Below, in pieces: positions 37,346 through 56,459 of a stretch of 64,000 nt of DNA. Source of the DNA: Podarcis bocagei (Eukaryota); the NCBI GenBank assembly GCA_964188305.1, contig OZ076889.1; one strand, given 5' to 3'. The notes below the pieces were generated by a model. The model saw nothing but the letters and a program-made list of their open reading frames with translations. It was not told where the DNA came from and did not search any database. The number at the start of each line of letters is the position of its first letter. Position 1 is the stretch's first letter. The translations under genes were made by a program, and so were the position numbers.

Positions 37346-37473
37346 ATGGCTTCAAGCAGCGGCACCGACGTGATCCAGGTCACCAACGTCTCCCCGAGCG
37401 CCAGCTCCGAACAGATGCGGACTCTCTTCGGCTTCCTGGGCAAGATCGAGGAGCTGCGCCTCTTCCCTCCCGA
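37346..37473 (+). CDS. SRSF11: SRSF11 coding exon 1
   Basis: GCGATGG Kozak; MASSSGTDVIQVTNVSPSASSEQMRTLFGFLGKIEELRLFPP; donor GA|GTGAGT. Confidence 0.92.
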
Positions 37474-40400: not shown

Positions 40401-43400
40401 ACTAGGTGCATGACAGAATCCCGTGTCAGTCACCTATTCCTGCTTTTGAAATCTATCTGCAACTAAATTTAGATGGTGAAGGGAAATTGAAATGATGAAT
40501 TTTCTACCTTTACCACTAGATGTCTCTTCCTCCAGAGATAAAGGTATTGTGCTGCTGCCCAAATGATGCCCTAGTATGGTATACACATCTATTGTGCAGC
40601 TGTGTATGACCTTATTTTGTAATAGCGTCTCTTGATTATTATTTTTTTGCATGTAGTGACAGCCAGCAAACCATACCCATCAGATCTCTTGCCTCTTGTG
40701 GCTGCTACATTTAATGGCAATGTAGTATAATATGAAAATAAAATACCATTACAACTCACTTTCAGTTTCATCTTCAGTCAAGTAATTCAATGATTTTGTT
40801 GGTCTTGCATTTAATATTCTTCCAATTTTTTTCCTTTCTAGTGACTCCCCTTTGCCTGTTTCTTCCCGTGTGTGTTTTGTAAAGTTCCAAGAACCTGACT
40901 CCGCAGTTGTGGCTCAGCATCTGACAAATACTGTATTCGTTGACAGAGCGTTGATAGTCGTACCATATGCAGAAGGTTTGTGAATTGTTTAATGATCTAT
41001 GAAGCCATAGAATAATGGTACTAAATCCTGATGTAGCTTAATAGCATGAAGTTTAGCACGTAAAACATTGAAGCTGTTTACCTATTTAAAACCCTTGGTA
41101 TACTGACACTGCTTGCTTTTATCCAAAAGTGAAACAATTAATTATTCAAGCAAAAGCTGGAACTTGCCTGTCAGTCTTTTTGCAAAGGCATTTAGAATAT
41201 TGATATGTTTAAGCAGCATTATTTGAATTTTTGTTTCATCAGGCCCCTTCAAGATAAGCAGTCTTTTAAAACTGATACATTTAAACAAGATAACTTGCAT
41301 TAAGTAACTTGGCATGTGTTGTCGTATGATTCATTCTCATAGAGAGTGAGTGGAAATGTGCTGCCAGTTACAAGGCAAAGTTCTGTTTACTGTAGTTGAC
41401 AATAATAATAAAAAAATACCCTCAGTACAAATTCTGGTACACCAAGGGTTTGATCTCAATTAGACAGAAAATATATCCAAAGGTGCTAAATGAGCACTGG
41501 GTGTTAGATCTTATTCCGCATTTTCTTGTTCAGCCTTGCTATATTATCTAGAATTTCACTAAATAATAAACTCTTCTCTCTGTTATTTGTGTGTGTGATT
41601 TTTGTAGTGGAGAAGGCAAATGCAAAGGCCCTTCCAGATGACTGAAACAGTGGGGTCCTCTGCAGCTACAGGGGATTCTAGACATTAACTAAAGGCCAGC
41701 AAGCACTCAAGTCCCCAAGTGTTTTCCTGGTGTAATCACTTGTTAACAACATTTTTTTCTCTTCTTTTTCTTACATTTTTAGGGTGTTACAGTAATTTGA
41801 AACCAATGAGCAGGGTTTGGGAACATAATTCAATAATTCAGTACCAAGAAGACTGCTCTTCTAACGAGTTCTATTAAACTTCTGTAGATTTCATCACAAC
41901 TATTTCAAATGCACCATTAATTGATAAACTAGTTAAATCGCTTGATTACAGTAAAATATGTGTAGTCTTGCACTTAATTCCTGCACTCACAGGCAGCTGG
42001 ATCTCATGGAGGTCAGTGGGATTTAAGCAGCCTAACTATGCAAGATTGTAGCGCAAGTCTTACCATTACCTGTTTTTATAAAAATATGTTTACACATTAA
42101 CAAGGCAGAGGAATATGCAGTGTGCAGACCTGGCAAAGACCTAGTTGTAGGATATTCCTCACTGAAGCTATAAGTAGTGTAAACAACTTTTAATCCTGAT
42201 CAGTTTTAAATTTCAGAGTAGAATATTTTTAGAATGTAATTGCTTCTGCTTTAGTTTGGACAAAATAACAATTGAGATATAATTGTTCTTGCATGAACAT
42301 CTACATATCAGGGCCAAACTAGATATGACAGTCTTTGCATTTAAACATAGACTTTCCCCAGTCACATAGAAAGAGCAGTTTGGAAGTTGATCTAGAACAG
42401 TTAAAGAACTGAAGTGCACAGAATCCTTCCTGTGCCTGCAGCTTAACTTCCTTGCAATCTGTCCCTCTGTGTTTTTATCCTTATCTGAGCTCTGATGCTG
42501 AAAATATGCTCAATGTTTGCAGAAAGGGGCTGTGGGGAGGTAAGAGCAGGTTGCGGTAGGTTTCAGGGGCTCTCACAGTTTTGCTTTTATTATTAAAAAT
42601 GGACCCGGACACCCTTTTTATGTGATTGGGGGAGGACTGCTGCACTCATATCTAGTTTGGCTCTAATAGCAGCAGTCCTGCCCTGTCAATTTCATCAAGA
42701 CTTAATTTGGCTCCTACAGAATCACCATGTTTTAAGCGTTTAATATTTTTATCTTTGAAAATACAATGTTCATTGTGCTAGAAAGATAAATCTGGCACTA
42801 AGAAATCAGCCAAATATATCACTTGAGAATCTCTTGAAATTTGTTTAATGCAACTTAAGTAGCTATTATTGACAGGGCCTCAATTTGGTGGTGTAGGATA
42901 TGTGTACAGCTGTGTAATTTGTGCGAGAACTATAATTGTGGACACAGTACTGTATAAGAATACTAGGGGTTTTTTCTGTGAACTTGAACTACTTTGTTCT
43001 TGCAATTCTTCCACGTCTATGGAATCAAACAAACTACTCATCAGTGGTTCATATTGCAAGAACCCCATTTCTGCTAGGTACTTAAGCATCATTCAGTGAG
43101 GTATTTCAAATTGAGTGGGATTGTTCATATGCATTGAACCACATGCTTAAGTACTCTGCTGAATTTAGATCTTGATTTTTAACTAGTGGTGATGGGTTTA
43201 ACATTACCTAACTGGAAGTATTAAAATACTTTACTGTGCTAATCACAGCTCCCTGTATCACTTACATTCCTGTTCTTTGTGTGTTCATATATCTTGGTGT
43301 TGGCTATTGCTTTGTGTTCTAGACTTACACAAAGTTCACGGTAAGGCATAGTACTATAAACTTCACTATGAAATTCAAGGATTTGGAAGGAACTCAGGTA

Positions 43401-46400
43401 TTAACAGTGCCTTTGGGTGGGGTTGTGTAGGTTCTTTGGTTAATGTTTGTTTATTTTGTCTGTTTCTTTTTCTTCATTTCTACACATTCATGCAGTATTT
43501 CATGGTTCTAACAAAGCAGCAGTAAAAAACACTTGACGCATGAAAATTAACTGGTGAGGGGCCTCATTGCTTTTTTAAAAATTGTAGTTTTATTTCTGAA
43601 TAACTTTTTTCCTAAAAATGAGAGGATCAGATGCATGACTACTTAATGGATGCAGATCTTCTATGAGGTGTCTCAGGATAAGAGGATTTTTAGTTAGATG
43701 CCAGAAATGTTATAGTTGCACTATTTGTGTGTAAACATAAATAATATCCTCTGAGACATAATTTTGCATGCAAAATTATCCCATAATCTCTATAGATAAT
43801 GTTTATATTGATGCATTAATGCCCTGTATCTAAATGACCTTCCCCCCTTTTCCCACCATAACTTTTGGTATTGAAATTATGACAGCTCAGTGACAGAAGA
43901 AAGATAACAGTGCTGTGTNNNNNNNNNNNNNNNNNNNNNNNNNNNNNNNNNNNNNNNNNNNNNNNNNNNNNNNNNNNNNNNNNNNNNNNNNNNNNNNNNN
44001 NNNNNNNNNNNNNNNNNNNNNNNNNNNNNNNNNNNNNNNNNNNNNNNNNNNNNNNNNNNNNNNNNNNNNNNNNNNNNNNNNNNNNNNNNNNNNNNNNNNN
44101 NNNNNNNNNNNNNNNNNNNNNNNNNNNNNNNNNNNNNNNNNNNNNNNNNNNNNNNNNNNNNNTGTATTTCAGAAACGCTACTGGTATTTGCAAATATATA
44201 GTACAGTTGTCTTATTGAACTCTCATATTGGGGGCTTGGGCACATTAACAGATTAAGCCATACGTATAGGGCTTTTGCTGTTGGATAAAATTACAACGAT
44301 CAACATTACTCTTTGTCCCACATTGGACCTCTTTAGTAAGGTTATTCTCTATTCAGGTTAGGCAGTAAAACTAGTCCCTTGCAGGCTACAAGGCTGCAGA
44401 GCAGAAATTTCTCCTGAAATGGCAATATGCAGTAGCATTCTTGGTATAGTAAGCATGACAAACAGTGGAGCATGTACTTTACTGCACAGGTAAGGATTGT
44501 GCCAAAATTTAGGCATTTACATAAACACATACACATGGACACATATGCAGAACCTTTATTTGAAGCTCTGTGGAGACCTTCATATCCATGTGACATGTCA
44601 GCAAAAGCCCTACATTTTTTCTTACCTTCGCTTAAGATTTACAAAATTGTATGGTAGGTGTAAANNNNNNNNNNNNNNNNNNNNNNNNNNNNNNNNNNNN
44701 NNNNNNNNNNNNNNNNNNNNNNNNNNNNNNNNNNNNNNNNNNNNNNNNNNNNNNNNNNNNNNNNNNNNNNNNNNNNNNNNNNNNNNNNNNNNNNNNNNNN
44801 NNNNNNNNNNNNNNNNNNNNNNNNNNNNNNNNNNNNNNNNNNNNNNNNNNNNNNNNNNNNNNNNNNNNNNNNNNNNNNNNNNNNNNNNNNNNNNNNNNNN
44901 NNNNNNNNNNNNNNNNNNNNNNNNNNNNNNNNNNNNNNNNCCTTTTGTAGAGAAAAAGGAACAGTCAAATTTTCACACATTGAAGTTTCATTCTGGCATA
45001 CAAATTAATGATAAATTATTAAGAGATCAAACATTGTATTATAGCCAACATAAGTACTTGCAGCAAACTCAGGTGGTGTTTCAGGGAGACATTTTCTGGG
45101 TATATTTGTGTGTGTGGTTTTTAAAAAAATCAGTGATGAGTGTCTTCTAATGCAAAGCTGTCTCTCTGCAGGAGTTATTCCTGATGAGACTAAGGCTTTG
45201 TCTCTCCTGGCACCAGCTAACGCTGTGGCAGGTCTTCTGCCGGGGGGTGGACTCCTGCCTACACCCAACCCACTTTCTCAGGTAAGTATACATCTTACGA
45301 GATGTATGCTAGAATGTACAACTGCATATATCTGTATTTTCTGAGATAACACCCATTACACCAAAACAGAAAAAAAAATGTATAACAGGATTTTGGCAGG
45401 TAAGAATCCAGATAACCATGCCTCTCGTTTTAAAGAACTCTGGTTTGAAACTTGATTCATGGTTATGCTTTGAAAGATGTCCCATTTATTCATTAAAATA
45501 TAAAGTGGGAAGACATGCCAGGGGTGGGGAGATGAGCAGTTTTTGTAGTTGCAGAAGTGACTTTTGCAGTCTTCTGGGGTGTCCCCACTTCCAGTATAAC
45601 AGTGCGCCTTCATGAGCAGTTAGTTGAGAGGATTAGCTGGCTGCATAACAAGGTTGAAGAAAGACAGTTTTCAGGCAGGCAACAAGAACTATCACACTAA
45701 CACACAGTGTGATACTGGTAATGCTATTCTTATTTCTCACACAGCCTCCTCAATACTTTCCCTGCACTAGGACTGTACTGTGGAGGCTGGAGTTAATGAA
45801 AAAAGCTTTCTAACTTCAGAAGCCCATGTAGAGGAGTATTCTAAAAGCTAACTGTAGAGATTTTCATCAAAGCTATACAGAAGAAACCTCTGCTGTAGGT
45901 TTCAGAAAACTGCTTTCTTGGGGCTTCCAAAGGTCACTCTAGTCCTGCCCATGTTTTCTTGGATAAAACCCCTAAAATAGGTCTGTAGTCAATAAGTTTA
46001 GCAGCGCTAGATTCTGTCCATAATGGGATCTTGTTAAAAGTGTACAAGTAGTTTTAGTAGCAAGGCCGGCATTGAGCATAGGCTTGACCCTGTTCCATAT
46101 GGTAGTACGTCTGTTGCAGGCTAGAATGCCACAGAACCCAGCAACTTAATCACAGCTGCCTCTTAAACTTATTTTAAACTTGTTAGCGTGCTGTTGGTTA
46201 GACATCCATGAACTTGGACGGTCACCTGATCAAGTGATTAAACTTTCTTTAATTGTACAAGTTGCTGTTAGCTAATCAATTGATTAAATCTGCACCTGCA
46301 TAGATCAGTAGTACTTAAGAAGCAGAGCATTTTTTATGGATCAGGTTACTTGGAAGTAAGTCCCAATGATACAGACAATTAGTCTGCTTGGAAGTGCACA

Positions 46401-49400
46401 TTGTGACACTTTGCCTTGGTGGCAGGGTGGTTTACTCATCCTTTTTCCTTTCAAAGACAATTTCAACAGGTGAGGTGAAGACTAGAAATTGCACCCGTGC
46501 ACAAGAGTTATGAGTCGCATGCATGCATCTTTCCTTCTATCACCTGCTGATTAGAGAGGAGGGAAATGTCAGAACATTAATTTCTAAAGTCAATCAGGGA
46601 CTTAACTAATTTGAAAATCTTAAATCGATTAATTGGGTTAATTAATCAAACTTTGCATTCCTAACTAGGACACACATGCTAGATAACAGGGAGTGATAGT
46701 ATATATGCTTTGCAGAAAGCTCAGATTCAATCCCCAGAATCACTATTCAGGTAGCAGATAACAGGAAATACTTTTTCATATGCTGGAGAGCTGCTATGAT
46801 TTAGCGTAGAAAATGCTAGGTTAGAATTATAGTAGTCTTACCCCTGTATAAGTCAGCTTCCTATGTCGCTTCATATTAATGTGCTGCAAGTCATTTTACA
46901 TCAGTACTTGAACGTTATGCAGAACAGTTCAAAACTATTCCTTGCCTTGTGCAGATGGTGGAAGCTGTTTTCTTGATTGTACATTCTGGTATAATATGCT
47001 GTCTACTTCTATTGATTCTCTTTATTATAGATTGGTGCTGTTCCCTTGGCTGCTTTAGGAGCTCCAACTCTTGACCCAGCCCTGGCTGCTCTAGGGCTTC
47101 CTGCAGCAAATTTAAACTCGCAGGTATATTGCTTGTGTTACATTCACATACACTTAAGTTTATTTTTAATTTGTGAATTTAACAGGGGGGGATAAAAAAA
47201 TAAGCATAATTTTTTGAAAATGAAACATATTATTAATGTATACCACCATCAGTGCACCTTAAGGGTACAGTAGCCATCAGTACAGCCATCTTGTGTCAAT
47301 AATCCAAATAGGTACCCACATGAAATTGGTGTCATATGTTCAGACATATGTTCAGATATAGCCAGGGCAGCGAGGTCCTCGGACCACTGCATGCAGATAG
47401 CAGGTGTTTATCCTTTAGGGCTTGCAGTATAAGTCTTTCAGCAACTAAGGGCTCGCAGTGTCCATTTTTTGGTTGTGCCTTTAATTTTTGTACTGTGGGA
47501 ATATAATTTCAAAGTACATGAGCATCTGCAAATATAAAGTATTTTACCACTACAAAATTGATATGGACAGCAACTTCAAACCACTGGAGAAGTTCATACC
47601 ATATGTCTCAATGAGGTATTTTCAGCATTACACCTCCATCCAGCATTATCTGTAATAGACAGTGCCTTTCTTTACAGATGTTGTAGAGTGCAGCATACCT
47701 GGAATATTAATTTTTGCTGTATCAATCTCAATTTCAAATCTAAAGAAACATTTCATATTGATTTTGAAGCATTTTTTATTTGTTTAGGATCTACTATATA
47801 CTGCTTTGGACACTATATACTGCTTTGATCTAGAATTTAATGAAACTGATACTTAACCAAGAACATTCAGCAATGAGTTAAACATGATTTTACATCAAGC
47901 ATTACACCTCCAGTATAAAAATTACAATAATTAGTCTTTCTATTATTTTTATAGATTTGTAGCTATCTCCCCAAGCCCCATTTGTTTAGAGACTCCATGG
48001 AATTTACATTTGTTTAGTCCTGCAGGGTTCAAACTGTGCTTTTTAACATCATGAAAATGCAAGATTTGAGATACAATGTCATTGATACCCAACACTGTTC
48101 CTCCATTTCATATAATTCAGATGAAGCAGTTGATTTGTTAAATCTTTATCTCAGCCCAGGATCAGGGCGTATAAAGCTCAGTCCGGACAAAACATTTGGT
48201 GAAACTTTGGTCTTTATCATTACTCATGTTCATATGACCCATTTGATATATAAAACACAGGGTAGCACTACCCACTGGCAGAGCTTCTTGTTGTATATAT
48301 TTTATTTTGCTTTAAAAGTTTTATTTGATTGAGATTTTCTTAAATAAATGAAATGGATTGTGTGTTTAAAATCGTACAGTCATACCTCAGGTTACGAACA
48401 CTGCGGGTTGCGCATTTTCAGGTTGCAGACTGCGCCAAACCCGGAAGTACCGGAACAGGTTACTTCTGGGTTTCAACGCATGTGCAGAAGCGCCGAATTG
48501 TGTCACATGTGTGTGCAGATGCAGCGCTGCGGGTTGTGTATGTGCCTCCCGCATGGATCGCGTTCACATCCCGAGGTATGACTGTATTCATGTGGCCTGT
48601 CCTCAAAGCCAAAGTTTTGCAAGAGTTAGTTATTGTTACTTCATCAGCATATTCTGTATTATGAACTCTTACTCATTCTCTTTAGGGGTTCTCTCTACTC
48701 AAACAGGGCATCACGCAGGCAAGCTCTATATTTATATCTATGGTCAATTGACCCCCACTATCCTATTTCCTAGTGTGGCTAGATTTGATTAGATTTGCTT
48801 ACCTTTAAAAATTTTGCAGATGAAAATTGCTGGAATCTTTAGAGTCGCATACTTATCTATTATAAAGGTTATGTAGAAAACTTGTAATCCGGAGCAAAAT
48901 TTCTAAAGTGTGAGTCTCAGTAAACTCAGTGCAACTGACTTCACACTAAACAGATTAGGATTATGTTGCACTGGCTAACTTTAAAAGCCCATAGTTACCC
49001 ACCATTGGAGTTCACACTTGGGGGTAACACAACTTCTAAGCAACTATCCATCTTGGAGACTAGCTATATAAGAACTTTTGACCCGTAGTCAAGCTTAATA
49101 TATAATTTAGCTTGTAAAATAAAACTATAGGCACAATTGAGAATTAAATGTGCATTGCAACTTTAAAATCTAACTTTACTGACAAGAACCACATCTGTCA
49201 ATTAGATTAAAGTACCATTAATGTTTAGAAAACAATTGCTACAAATATAGCACAAGTTTAGCTTCGCTCTTTTCACTCAACAGCTTGACTGTTAAACCCT
49301 TGGCATTTTAAACAAACAGTAAAATAAAGACCAGTTCTTCAGCAAACTGGACGCTCTCAATCAATGCAGTTGAGAATTAAGTGCTGACATTAACCACTAC

Positions 49401-52400: not shown

Positions 52401-55400
52401 TGTGAAGGTAACTTTTAAGGTCAACTTCATTGAGATAAATTGAGAAGTTGGTTATGGGACAACTCAGTCACAGTAAGTAAAGTATGGTACAATACAATAC
52501 AGTAAGATGAATATTAAATATTGTTCTGTTCAATAGACGGTCAAGAAGCCGGTCAAGGAGACGATCTCACTCAAAATCAAGAAGCAGGAGACGATCTAAA
52601 AGTCCTCGGCGACGGAGGTCTCATTCCAGAGAGCGTGTTCGAAGGTCTCGGAGCACATCCAAACCCAGGTAATCCCTAGAAACTTAGTACATCCTTCAAT
52701 ACGAAAAGTATCAGAATTACAGTCTTGGCTATTAGAAAGTCAGAGCTATAGCTACAGGAGTTTGATAAATTCATTATGCAAGGACAGTGAGAGAGCTAAT
52801 CTGCGTGTACCTTTTTTATCTAATTGGTTTTTTAGAGACAAAAAGAAAGAAGAGAAAGAGAAGAAACGGTCTAAAACTCCACCAAAGAGTTACAGCACAG
52901 CCAGACGATCCAGAAGCACAAGCAGGTGCCGTATAACCTTTAATCTTGTATTTACTTTGCAAAAGTAATTGTGCATATCCTGCTGCATCGGACTGACCAA
53001 AAGGGTTATATAGTATCAAATAAAAGCATTTTCTTTGAACTACAGGGCTTCACATAACAAAGATGATGTAAAACATACTTAATGAGTTCATTTATGTAAG
53101 TTTTTCCTGTCTTGCGAGCCAGCAGACCCATTTCATGCAGGCATCTTGCAGTCTGAACTGTAGGTAGGCAGGTTGCTCTTTCCTATACACATAGCCCCCT
53201 TTTACTTTCCATTTCTAAGGAGTAACAAAACCATAGGGTTGTATCTGACACTGCGTGAGCAGAAAGCAAGCTGATGTGAGAGATCTTTACCTTCCCTTCC
53301 TCACCCCATACCTTCTCTCCGAAAAGCCTGTCCAAAGGTCAGCTGTCGTCCCCCCACCCAACCAAGGAAGGCGACAGTTAATTCTTTATTGACAAAAGCT
53401 CGCACTTACAGCAGCTCCTAAGGTGCACCAGAAGCATACAAACACTTCTAGTGTTTACGTAGCTGGCATTAACTTTCCCATGTTTGTGCCCCAGTGGAGC
53501 AGTTGAAGCAACAGTGGGACCATGCGCCCTCCCCCCAGGCTTATGTATCCTCATTTGACGGAATACACACACGCAACCTGAGACTTCTCTTGCACAGAAG
53601 TCGTTGCTGCGCCTCCCCCTTCAAGACCCTTCTGGTTCTGTATAGACAACATGGGTATGATGGGAATGTTAAAGTGATACTTAAAAACAATGGAGATGTT
53701 TATTTGAAGGCATCTTGACTTCTGTTATTAACTACAGAGAAAGACGGCGCAGAAGAAGCAGAAGTGGATCTAGGTCACCTAAAAAGCCCAGGTCTCCCAA
53801 GAGAAAGCCGTCCAGGTCTCCTTCACCAAAAAGGTTTGTTTATTTAACAAATCCATAAACTGTAGACTTCTGCTTTGGGAAGGACACAGTGAGAAGGCAT
53901 CCGTCTCATTGTTGCCAGGAAATCCTTGGAGCATGTTATTTTGTTAATAAGTGTACTTAGATTACCATGACTGTGGCCATTTGAGCAAACTATGGTATAT
54001 AATGGGATATGTTGAAAGGATTATAGCTTTTATTATGTTATTTTTATAAATGTTCTTTGCTATATAACATGTCAAAAGTGATGACCATATAAGTTGTAGA
54101 ATTTCCTCTTTTTTATACCTGTACACATAATTGGTTTATTTAGTGTCTCCATTGTTGTCCTGCTTTATGGTTAGTTAGTGGCTAGTGCCTGATGCTACCT
54201 GTGATCTTTTAGAAACAAAAAATACTGTGTTTTTGAAAGGAAAGGAACAGTGTAGCTTGTGAGTTGGACCTATCACACCCAAAATTGGGTGAAATAATTT
54301 CTTAGTCTGCCATCTTGATTCAGAATGGTGCCCAGAACCCTTGTGGTGATTCTGGTAATGGTAATTTGAGAGGTGGCCGAAGCTATGTCAAAATGGCCAA
54401 AGTCACACTAATGTGATGTTTCAGTCCACCACCTTGATTCACAACAGTGCCAAGTAGCAACGAAGTCTGCTGTCCCGCCGAAGGAACCCTCATGCTAAGT
54501 TTGGTGATGATATTGCGAGAAGCAACCAAACCTGTGCGAAAAATTGAAGAAGTGACATTTCTCTCTGCTGACTTGATTTAAAATGTCAGCCAGCATCCAA
54601 ACATTTACAAAGATCACTATCCCCACTTTGTTTGGCAATGATATCTCACCTATAGAGAACAGACGGACTGACAAATCCCTTTCCAAAACATATAATAGTT
54701 TAAAATTCTGGGCTGAGAAGGTATTTTAAAAACTAAAATCAGATTGATAGGAGGGCTTGTTACATTCATTTTAGTGCTTGTAGCCGATACAGTTGATACT
54801 TTTGTGTGAATAATTTTATATACTTCTAAGGAGAGTGGAATTGTTTGGATGGTTTTTTAGTAAACTAGCTTTTATAGAATTATAGGCAAGAGTAAATTTC
54901 TTTAGCTTGAATCTGAATATTACCAACAGATCAGTCCAGCAAAAATCTCACCCTCGGCAGAACCAGTTTTGGATGTACAGCTTGCCATAACCATACTTTT
55001 TGTTCAAATTTGGCTTCTGGCTACTTGAAGGGGGGCAGGGAGGAGAACTGAAATATTTCACTGATCATATAAAATGCCTATATTTCTCAGTTTCTTGAAT
55101 TATCTTACTGCCTTAGGCACAAAAAAGAGAAGAAAAAGGATAAAGACAAGGAGAGAACCAGGGATGAACGCGAGAGGTCAACAAGCAAGAAGAAAAAGAG
55201 TAAAGACAAAGAGAAGGATCGAGAGAGAAAGTCAGAGAGTGACAAAGATGTCAAAGTATGCTTTAAAAATCTGTTTTGTTTGTTTGTGCAGTGTCCTACT
55301 TAACCCTAGAATCCCAAGAGCCTTTAAGCATGTCTTACATACTTTGCTTTGTGTTTTATCTTGGCAAAGCAGGTCACAAGGGATTATGATGAAGAAGAAC

Positions 55401-55564: not shown

Positions 55565-56459
55565 ATATTGCCTTGGCAGTGAAAACAGTTGCCGACATGC
55601 ATCAGTGTCATTCCTGTGTGATTCCTTTATGCTGTACTTGTTTAACCTTTTAAGCTAGATGTACACAGCTGTAACTATAACTGGTTGTAAAGCTCCTGAT
55701 ATTAAATAATTACATCAAAAGCTTTAGAGAAAGTGATGTCTGGGTTTCCATTCTTGTTATTGGCCAAACTGAATTGAGTAGCCCAGCAGTTCTTATTAAA
55801 CTTGGTGCTGCTTTTTTCATTTTTGAGCAAAAAGCTGCATGCATCTTTGGCAGGCATGGACTGTTTGTGTTGTATGATCTTTTTAGTAAACCAGCTCACC
55901 TACAATAGTGTTTCTAGAGTTTGATTCATTTGCGGTAATAGAGCAAAATAGGGAATGCACTGGCTGCATGTTAACTGTGGCAAGAACATCCTCATCTCCT
56001 ACAACATGGTGGATCTACTAAGGGTCTTAAATGTAGACAAAGAAACTAACATTAGCTTCATCTGGAAACAAACGTTCTGATAGACATAACCTTTTTAGCC
56101 TTGTGGCTAAATCTTTTTGTTGTGGATTTGTTTGGCTTTGGCAAGGTTGAAATGCACTAGCCTTTTTTGATGCCCAATGTAAGGTGAACTTCGAGTCTAA
56201 ATCCTTCTCAGGTGGTGTGTTTGATTTTTGACAACTTGGACTTCTTGAGATAGTAATGCAAAACTTCTGTAAGACAGGAGGGAGTGAACCTTGTGTAGTT
56301 CTTCATAACCTGCGTTTATTTCATTTTGTTTGTATGTGTAAAAACCCTGCAAAAAAGGATAGTGCATTTAAAAAAATTGAACTTCATGATAATTTTAAAA
56401 CATGATGATTTTAAAACAAGTCTACTTGATAATGTACTTGATCGCAAGTTGTATAAACT

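Follow-up and report, generated by a model that had tools for sequence, protein, structure and literature searches.

The stretch analysed here is a window of 64,000 nucleotides (nt) from the lacertid lizard Podarcis bocagei (contig OZ076889.1 of assembly GCA_964188305.1), which carries on its + strand the gene for SRSF11. The gene has 12 coding exons encoding 457 amino acids, with the stop codon at about position 55566, and its product is 99.8% identical to isoform X4 of Podarcis raffonei. We focused on an exon-like unit of 18 nt, ACTTACACAAAGTTCACG, in intron 2 of SRSF11 (Table 1). A sequence-only reading of the window had proposed that this unit is a neural microexon with two outcomes, in which a single acceptor gives either an in-frame insert of six residues or, by way of a second donor, a poison exon that sends the mRNA to nonsense-mediated decay (NMD). 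Our comparison with orthologous introns upheld that proposal in part: the anatomy is as described and the element is a conserved, exon-like one, whereas the functional, dual-outcome part did not hold up.

Table 1. Positions of SRSF11 features in the window (a slash marks an exon–intron boundary)
Feature	Positions	Strand	Remarks
First listed coding exon	37346-37473	+	
Coding exon 2	40842-40975	+	end of RRM, ...PYAE; leaves phase 1
Intron 2 conserved block	41476-41890		deepest-conserved; also in fish and frog
Intron 2 conserved block	43294-43918		
Candidate 3′ splice-site region	43294-43322	+	GU/U-rich; TGC 43308-43310; AG 43321-43322
Exon-like 18-nt unit ACTTACACAAAGTTCACG	43323-43340	+	frame kept in this species only; DLHKVH
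First 5′ splice-site motif, GTAAGG	43341-43346 (region 43341-43349)	+	strong
TAG	43349-43351	+	in frame when the first donor is skipped
Second donor, CAG/GTATTA	43398-43403	+	GT 43398-43399; would yield a 75-nt version
Pyrimidine tract and CAG acceptor	43430-43495	+	AG 43494-43495; 85-95% of columns identical in 8 amniotes
58-nt stop-carrying cassette	43496-43553	+	in-frame TGA
GTGAGG donor and flank	43554-43569	+	invariant in 8 amniotes
N run inside conserved block	43919-44162		orthologous intervals 244-246 nt, by coordinates only
Intron 2 conserved block	44163-44664		
N run inside conserved block	44665-44940		orthologous intervals 274-280 nt
Intron 2 conserved block	44941-45171		68-92% identity in birds and mammals
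Coding exon 3	45172-45281	+	starts GVIPDETKAL...

All the features on which the earlier proposal had been built, namely the acceptor AG, the upstream TGC, the 18-nt unit, the GTAAGG donor, the second GT and the TAG, were present where it had placed them. The 74 nt upstream of the candidate acceptor are free of any other AG. When exon 2, the 18 nt and exon 3 were joined in silico, the product read ...PYAE-DLHKVH-GVIPD... with the frame kept, and the 75-nt version that extends to the second donor read ...DLHKVHGKA followed by the stop at 43349. With its 18-nt length and its AG and GT flanks, the unit fits the 3–27 nt size class of microexons. A repeat check found no further copy of the mini-exon region elsewhere within the window, and an Rfam scan of SRSF11 intron 2 gave no credible match.

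We then compared the window with annotated SRSF11 genes, introns included, of gecko, anole, rattlesnake, quail, swallow, cow, opossum, Xenopus laevis and bonefish. In the alignments, an acceptor TAG/A and the arrangement CACAAAG...ACG/GTAAG are common to the lacertid, gecko, anole, rattlesnake, quail, swallow and cow. Within the unit, CACAAAG and ACG are invariant, and insertions and deletions are confined to the 5′ half. Among these seven amniotes, the 3′ splice-site region, the exon and the donor have mean pairwise identities of 0.84, 0.80 and 0.97, respectively, and eight of the nine donor columns from −3 to +6 are invariant; identity drops to 0.61 over the 34 nt directly downstream of the donor. 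The unit is therefore a peak of constraint in its own right, and more than the flank of a broader conserved block. The nucleotide-level conservation of the unit and its flanks exceeds that of the other SRSF11 introns, which fail to align. TAGT, which includes the TAG of Table 1, is conserved, as part of the intronic block, in the seven species that keep the unit, but not in opossum; the opossum has also lost the donor GTAAG. Nothing comparable to the unit was found in the SRSF11 loci of Xenopus laevis and bonefish.

While the bounding AG and GT are kept in the six other amniotes, the length between them is not. With the best acceptor taken in each species, the unit measures 18 nt in the lacertid, 19 nt in gecko, anole and rattlesnake, 20 nt in quail and swallow, and 22 nt in cow. 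Loss of the 18-nt length in orthologues was among the findings that the sequence-only reading had itself named as refuting it, and its functional part therefore fails. Inclusion of the unit disrupts the reading frame in six of the seven species, by a stop after 10 codons (gecko, anole and rattlesnake), a frameshift (quail and swallow) or an internal TAG (cow), and leaves it intact in the lacertid alone, where a premature stop arises only by way of the weak, lineage-specific second donor and not by way of the first. For birds to make an in-frame form of 18 nt, a second and poor AG (score −2.5) would have to be used, and the peptide would then be AIHKVY or AIHKGY, as against DLHKVH here; the encoded peptide is not conserved. 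Judged by parsimony over gecko, anole and snake, 19 nt is the ancestral length in squamates and the lacertid 18 nt is derived by deletion of a single nucleotide, which made the unit frame-preserving. These comparisons show, at the level of sequence, that the unit is conserved as nucleotides and is indifferent to the reading frame.

Splice sites were scored with a crude matrix, fit for ranking only. On this scale, the candidate acceptor scored 1.95, against −1.5 to 5.1 for the real SRSF11 acceptors, and the first donor scored 5.69, against −0.05 to 8.6 for the real donors. The second donor scored −0.71, which is below every real SRSF11 donor scored (the donor of exon 2 was left out). Taking the candidate's own scores as thresholds, we counted acceptor/donor pairs lying 3–27 nt apart and found three pairs as good as the candidate on the + strand of the window and one on the − strand, with a Markov-1 expectation of 0.98 such pairs per 64-kb strand, or 0.56 if a TGC was also required. 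A TGC within 35 nt of an acceptor is common by chance. The motif alone is not beyond chance and proves little; what places the unit beyond chance is its conservation across species.

The surroundings of the unit are themselves under constraint. Intron 2 is conserved far more than the other introns of the gene, which remain unaligned even between lizard and gecko. The deepest-conserved block has identities of 85–91% in birds, cow and opossum, 87% in Xenopus laevis and 82.5% in bonefish. Further downstream, an element at 43430–43569, composed of a pyrimidine tract with its acceptor, a 58-nt stop-carrying cassette and a donor, is 85–100% invariant in eight amniotes and is absent from the SRSF11 loci of Xenopus laevis and bonefish. 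Its exon is 58–62 nt long in the other amniotes, since runs of A differ in length, and its acceptor lies 155 nt downstream of the donor of the mini-exon. In mouse Srsf11, a small NMD cassette called 'exon 4' is increased in Upf2-knockout cortex (PMC5311500). For human SRSF11, two poison exons are described, and the introns on either side of them are retained in nuclear speckles (PMC12052203). From its position and conservation, the 58-nt cassette is probably the orthologue of the small mouse cassette, and the element would likewise fit one of the two human poison exons. A candidate exon at 41608–41729, within the deepest-conserved block, is possibly the other poison exon of SRSF11.

We favour, with moderate confidence, the reading that the 18-nt stretch is an exon-like splicing unit that is conserved without being coding, and that it works in intron 2, the autoregulatory intron of SRSF11, as a poison microexon or else as a decoy. 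In its anatomy, a 3′ splice site of modest strength is followed after 18–22 nt by a strong 5′ splice site, near the 58-nt stop-carrying exon. According to this proposal, the U1 small nuclear ribonucleoprotein would bind the invariant ACG/GUAAGG. The unit might then be included in a small share of transcripts, where, as a microexon that breaks the frame, it would direct the mRNA to NMD; alternatively, it might serve as a decoy and, by engaging the splicing machinery, tune the use of the neighbouring poison exon and the retention of intron 2. Since the reading frame would be irrelevant to both functions, the length of the unit would have been free to drift to 19, 20 and 22 nt, and the six-residue DLHKVH insert of lacertids would be a lineage-specific by-product rather than a conserved purpose.

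Several considerations weigh against this proposal. The loss of the donor in opossum implies that at least one mammal can do without the unit. The real SRSF11 splice sites span the whole range of the crude matrix, the unit shows no compensatory changes, and its link to the poison exon is a presumed one. The evidence fits a poison microexon and a decoy equally and does not discriminate between them. Finally, it is from sequence that we infer the splicing of the unit in any species, together with U1 binding and a regulatory effect.

Conserved unproductive splicing is the means by which SR-protein genes restrain their own expression. The unit resembles the ultraconserved poison NMD cassettes of SR genes (PMC5311500, PMC12052203) in that it lies in the same gene and the same regulatory intron, is conserved at the nucleotide level regardless of frame, would if included disrupt the open reading frame in six of the seven species and lies close to a stop-carrying exon. 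It differs from the neighbouring 58-nt poison exon in being far shorter (18–22 nt), less conserved and lost in opossum, and from SR-gene poison cassettes in general in that the short form of the lizard, being in frame, would not be poisonous. Turning to decoys, Parra and colleagues are reported to have described, in RNA in 2018, decoy non-productive exons within retained or detained introns of RNA-processing genes. Those decoys share with the unit a conserved pair of splice sites within an intron, here one reported to be retained in speckles in human, and the unit has no known coding isoform; they differ in being exons of ordinary size.

The next explanation to be weighed treats the unit as a conserved cis-element of the intron that is never spliced, with its AG and GT serving as parts of binding motifs. 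It could be an enhancer or a silencer bound by protein, or a hairpin in the RNA, next to the poison exon. We regard this explanation as rather unlikely, although several observations are in its favour: the whole intron is constrained, the unit lies at the edge of a conserved block of about 1 kb, and no annotated isoform has it. If the mouse NMD cassette is numbered 'exon 4', an additional annotated exon between the poison exons would also have no place. In addition, GCUUUGUGU, upstream of the acceptor, can pair with ACACAAAGU within the unit, through a complementarity that is conserved; the predicted hairpin (43309–43335) has 9 bp, encloses the 3′ splice site with the AG in its loop and folds at −15.1 kcal/mol. 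However, the corresponding z score of −1.75 is not significant, the orthologues show no covariation or compensatory changes in the GCUUUGUGU/ACACAAAGU pairing, and the pairing is broken in cow. The peak of conservation coincides exactly with a layout of 3′ splice site, short spacer and 5′ splice site, the most conserved 9 nt form a near-consensus U1 site, and insertions and deletions are tolerated in the spacer only.

To look for a coding isoform, we gathered SRSF11 proteins with an exon-6 query and with word searches on residues downstream of the RRM junction; 290 proteins were collected, of which 167 span the junction of exons 2 and 3. None of these 167 has an insert at the PYAE/GVIPD junction, including the NCBI lacertid isoforms X1 (Podarcis muralis), X2 (Zootoca vivipara) and X4 (P. 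muralis, P. raffonei, P. lilfordi and Z. vivipara); this negative is of moderate weight, as members of 90% clusters were only partly visible, and is weak as regards isoforms, because short exons can be missed. Annotation pipelines easily overlook short exons. Two of the collected proteins are gene-model artefacts, in which intron sequence directly upstream of exon 3 is read through. The lacertid isoforms differ from one another only by an 11-residue insert, encoded by a 33-nt cassette, and by a one-codon choice of acceptor in the last exon. A literature search found no paper describing a microexon within SRSF11. There was no SRSF11 entry in the supplement tables examined from MicroExonator (mouse) and from a preprint on SRRM3/4 sensitivity, and one human table listed SRSF11 only as a 117-nt cassette elsewhere in the gene.

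These protein data bear on the explanation that the unit is an exaptation, the 1-nt deletion having made in lacertids a genuine coding microexon for DLHKVH, with or without SRRM4, that is used too little, or in too few tissues, to have been annotated. The 18-nt form is indeed in frame and without a stop, its splice sites score within or above the range of real SRSF11 sites, its length is the derived state, and an exon so short could have been passed over in annotation. On the other hand, the isoforms of the four lacertids lack the insert and yet capture both the 33-nt cassette and the one-codon choice, and to land in frame is a one-in-three chance, for which selection is not needed. Exaptation of this kind is, in our judgement, unlikely.

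A composite of the two proposals is a little more doubtful still. It holds that a poison or decoy microexon, frame-breaking and common to sauropsids and placental mammals, guards the SRSF11 poison exon, and that the lacertid deletion turned it into a coding microexon that keeps the frame, possibly under the control of SRRM4 through the conserved UGC. If this were true, the lacertid unit would be a regulatory 'junk' exon caught in the act of becoming protein-coding, adding six residues after the RRM of a co-regulator of microexons.

The explanation originally offered, a neural coding microexon dependent on SRRM4 and UGC, whose donor switch chooses between the six-residue insert and the 75-nt poison exon in a feedback loop, appears improbable to us. 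Its starting point in the literature was correct: SRSF11 cooperates with SRRM4 and RNPS1 on UGC-bearing microexons. The lizard sequence also has much of what it calls for. Of the two forms, the one of 18 nt keeps the frame and the one of 75 nt contains a TAG, and the combination of a strong 5′ splice site, a weaker 3′ splice site and a 74-nt zone free of AG matches the profile published for SRRM4-dependent microexons. The UGC, at −15 to −13 of the unit, is kept in the six sauropsids; cow has UGG, and a single TGC within 35 nt is common by chance. An upstream UC-repeat element is reportedly, in work of Gonatopoulos-Pournatzis from 2018, the half of the enhancer that SRSF11 binds. No TCTC or CTCT (UCUC-type) occurs within 100 nt upstream of the unit, where the tract is GU/U-rich.

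The dual outcome needs the second donor. The corresponding position reads AAATAT in gecko and anole, AGATAT in rattlesnake and AAGATT in quail, and has no GT in cow; the donor is missing in all six other species and, as noted above, ranks below all the real donors scored. The GT at 43398 is a weak, lineage-specific one and is probably not used. The predicted 9-bp hairpin over the 3′ splice site also contrasts with the unusually unpaired state reported for this region in neural microexons. Together with the lack of conservation of length, frame and peptide, the absence of the insert from all the spanning proteins and the absence of SRSF11 from the MicroExonator (mouse) and SRRM3/4 tables examined, these sequence comparisons do not support an SRRM4-driven neural dual-outcome switch as a conserved mechanism.

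The position of the unit relative to known neural microexons can be stated accordingly. It shares with the microexons governed by SRRM4, SRSF11 and RNPS1, as they appear in summaries of Gonatopoulos-Pournatzis 2018, a length within 3–27 nt, a UGC near the 3′ splice site, a conserved flanking intron, an extended zone free of AG, and a strong 5′ splice site paired with a weaker 3′ one. It differs from them in its unconserved length, frame and peptide, in the absence of the UGC from cow, in its lack of a UC-repeat, in the predicted hairpin and in being neither listed nor annotated as coding among the species examined.

It could also be that splice-like motifs have come to lie together by chance and serve no function. 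The expectation of about one equal or better pair per 64-kb strand and the commonness of a TGC within 35 nt lend this some colour, but it is hardly credible in view of the retention of both motifs across the sauropsid–mammal split with a local peak of conservation.

If the unit is indeed a poison microexon or a decoy, this small conserved pair of splice sites would offer, at a distance of 155 nt on the upstream side, a mutable handle on the use of the SRSF11 poison exon and on the detention of the intron. In the 1-nt deletion of lacertids, nature would have tested whether a unit of this kind can bear, or even acquire, a coding use. If, on the other hand, the unit is never spliced, it carries a caution: mini-exons that keep the frame in a single genome and have a UGC and a GTAAG are to be expected by chance and need to be checked against orthologues.

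Some further observations were made on SRSF11 in the window. The two runs of N in intron 2 (Table 1) lie inside conserved blocks, and we compared the lengths of these intervals with those in gecko, quail and cow. The alignments reach the edges of the runs and the orthologous lengths are nearly equal, which suggests that the runs mask real sequence rather than representing assembly gaps. In intron 3, at 46457–46469, there is a 13-nt, frame-shifting candidate microexon, of which the acceptor (5.4) and donor (8.5) both score above those of the mini-exon on the crude matrix. No orthologous locus aligns with it, and it is probably a product of chance.

Between coding exons 4 and 5, a 33-nt cassette at 48686–48718 has a GC donor, CAG/GCAAGC (GC-AG), and encodes GFSLLKQGITQ, the 11-residue insert of Podarcis muralis X1 and Zootoca vivipara X2; this insert was not found in the other taxa collected. 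Some mammalian SRSF11 isoforms (P0188, P0180 and P0185) are longer by 6–7 residues, owing to an SSLHIC-type insert after residue 338. That insert lies inside the RS domain and not at the RRM junction, and is distinct from the mini-exon. The last SRSF11 coding exon has a tandem acceptor, AAAG/CAG/, at 55361–55375, which accounts for a difference of one residue (Q) among the isoforms of lizards and other tetrapods.

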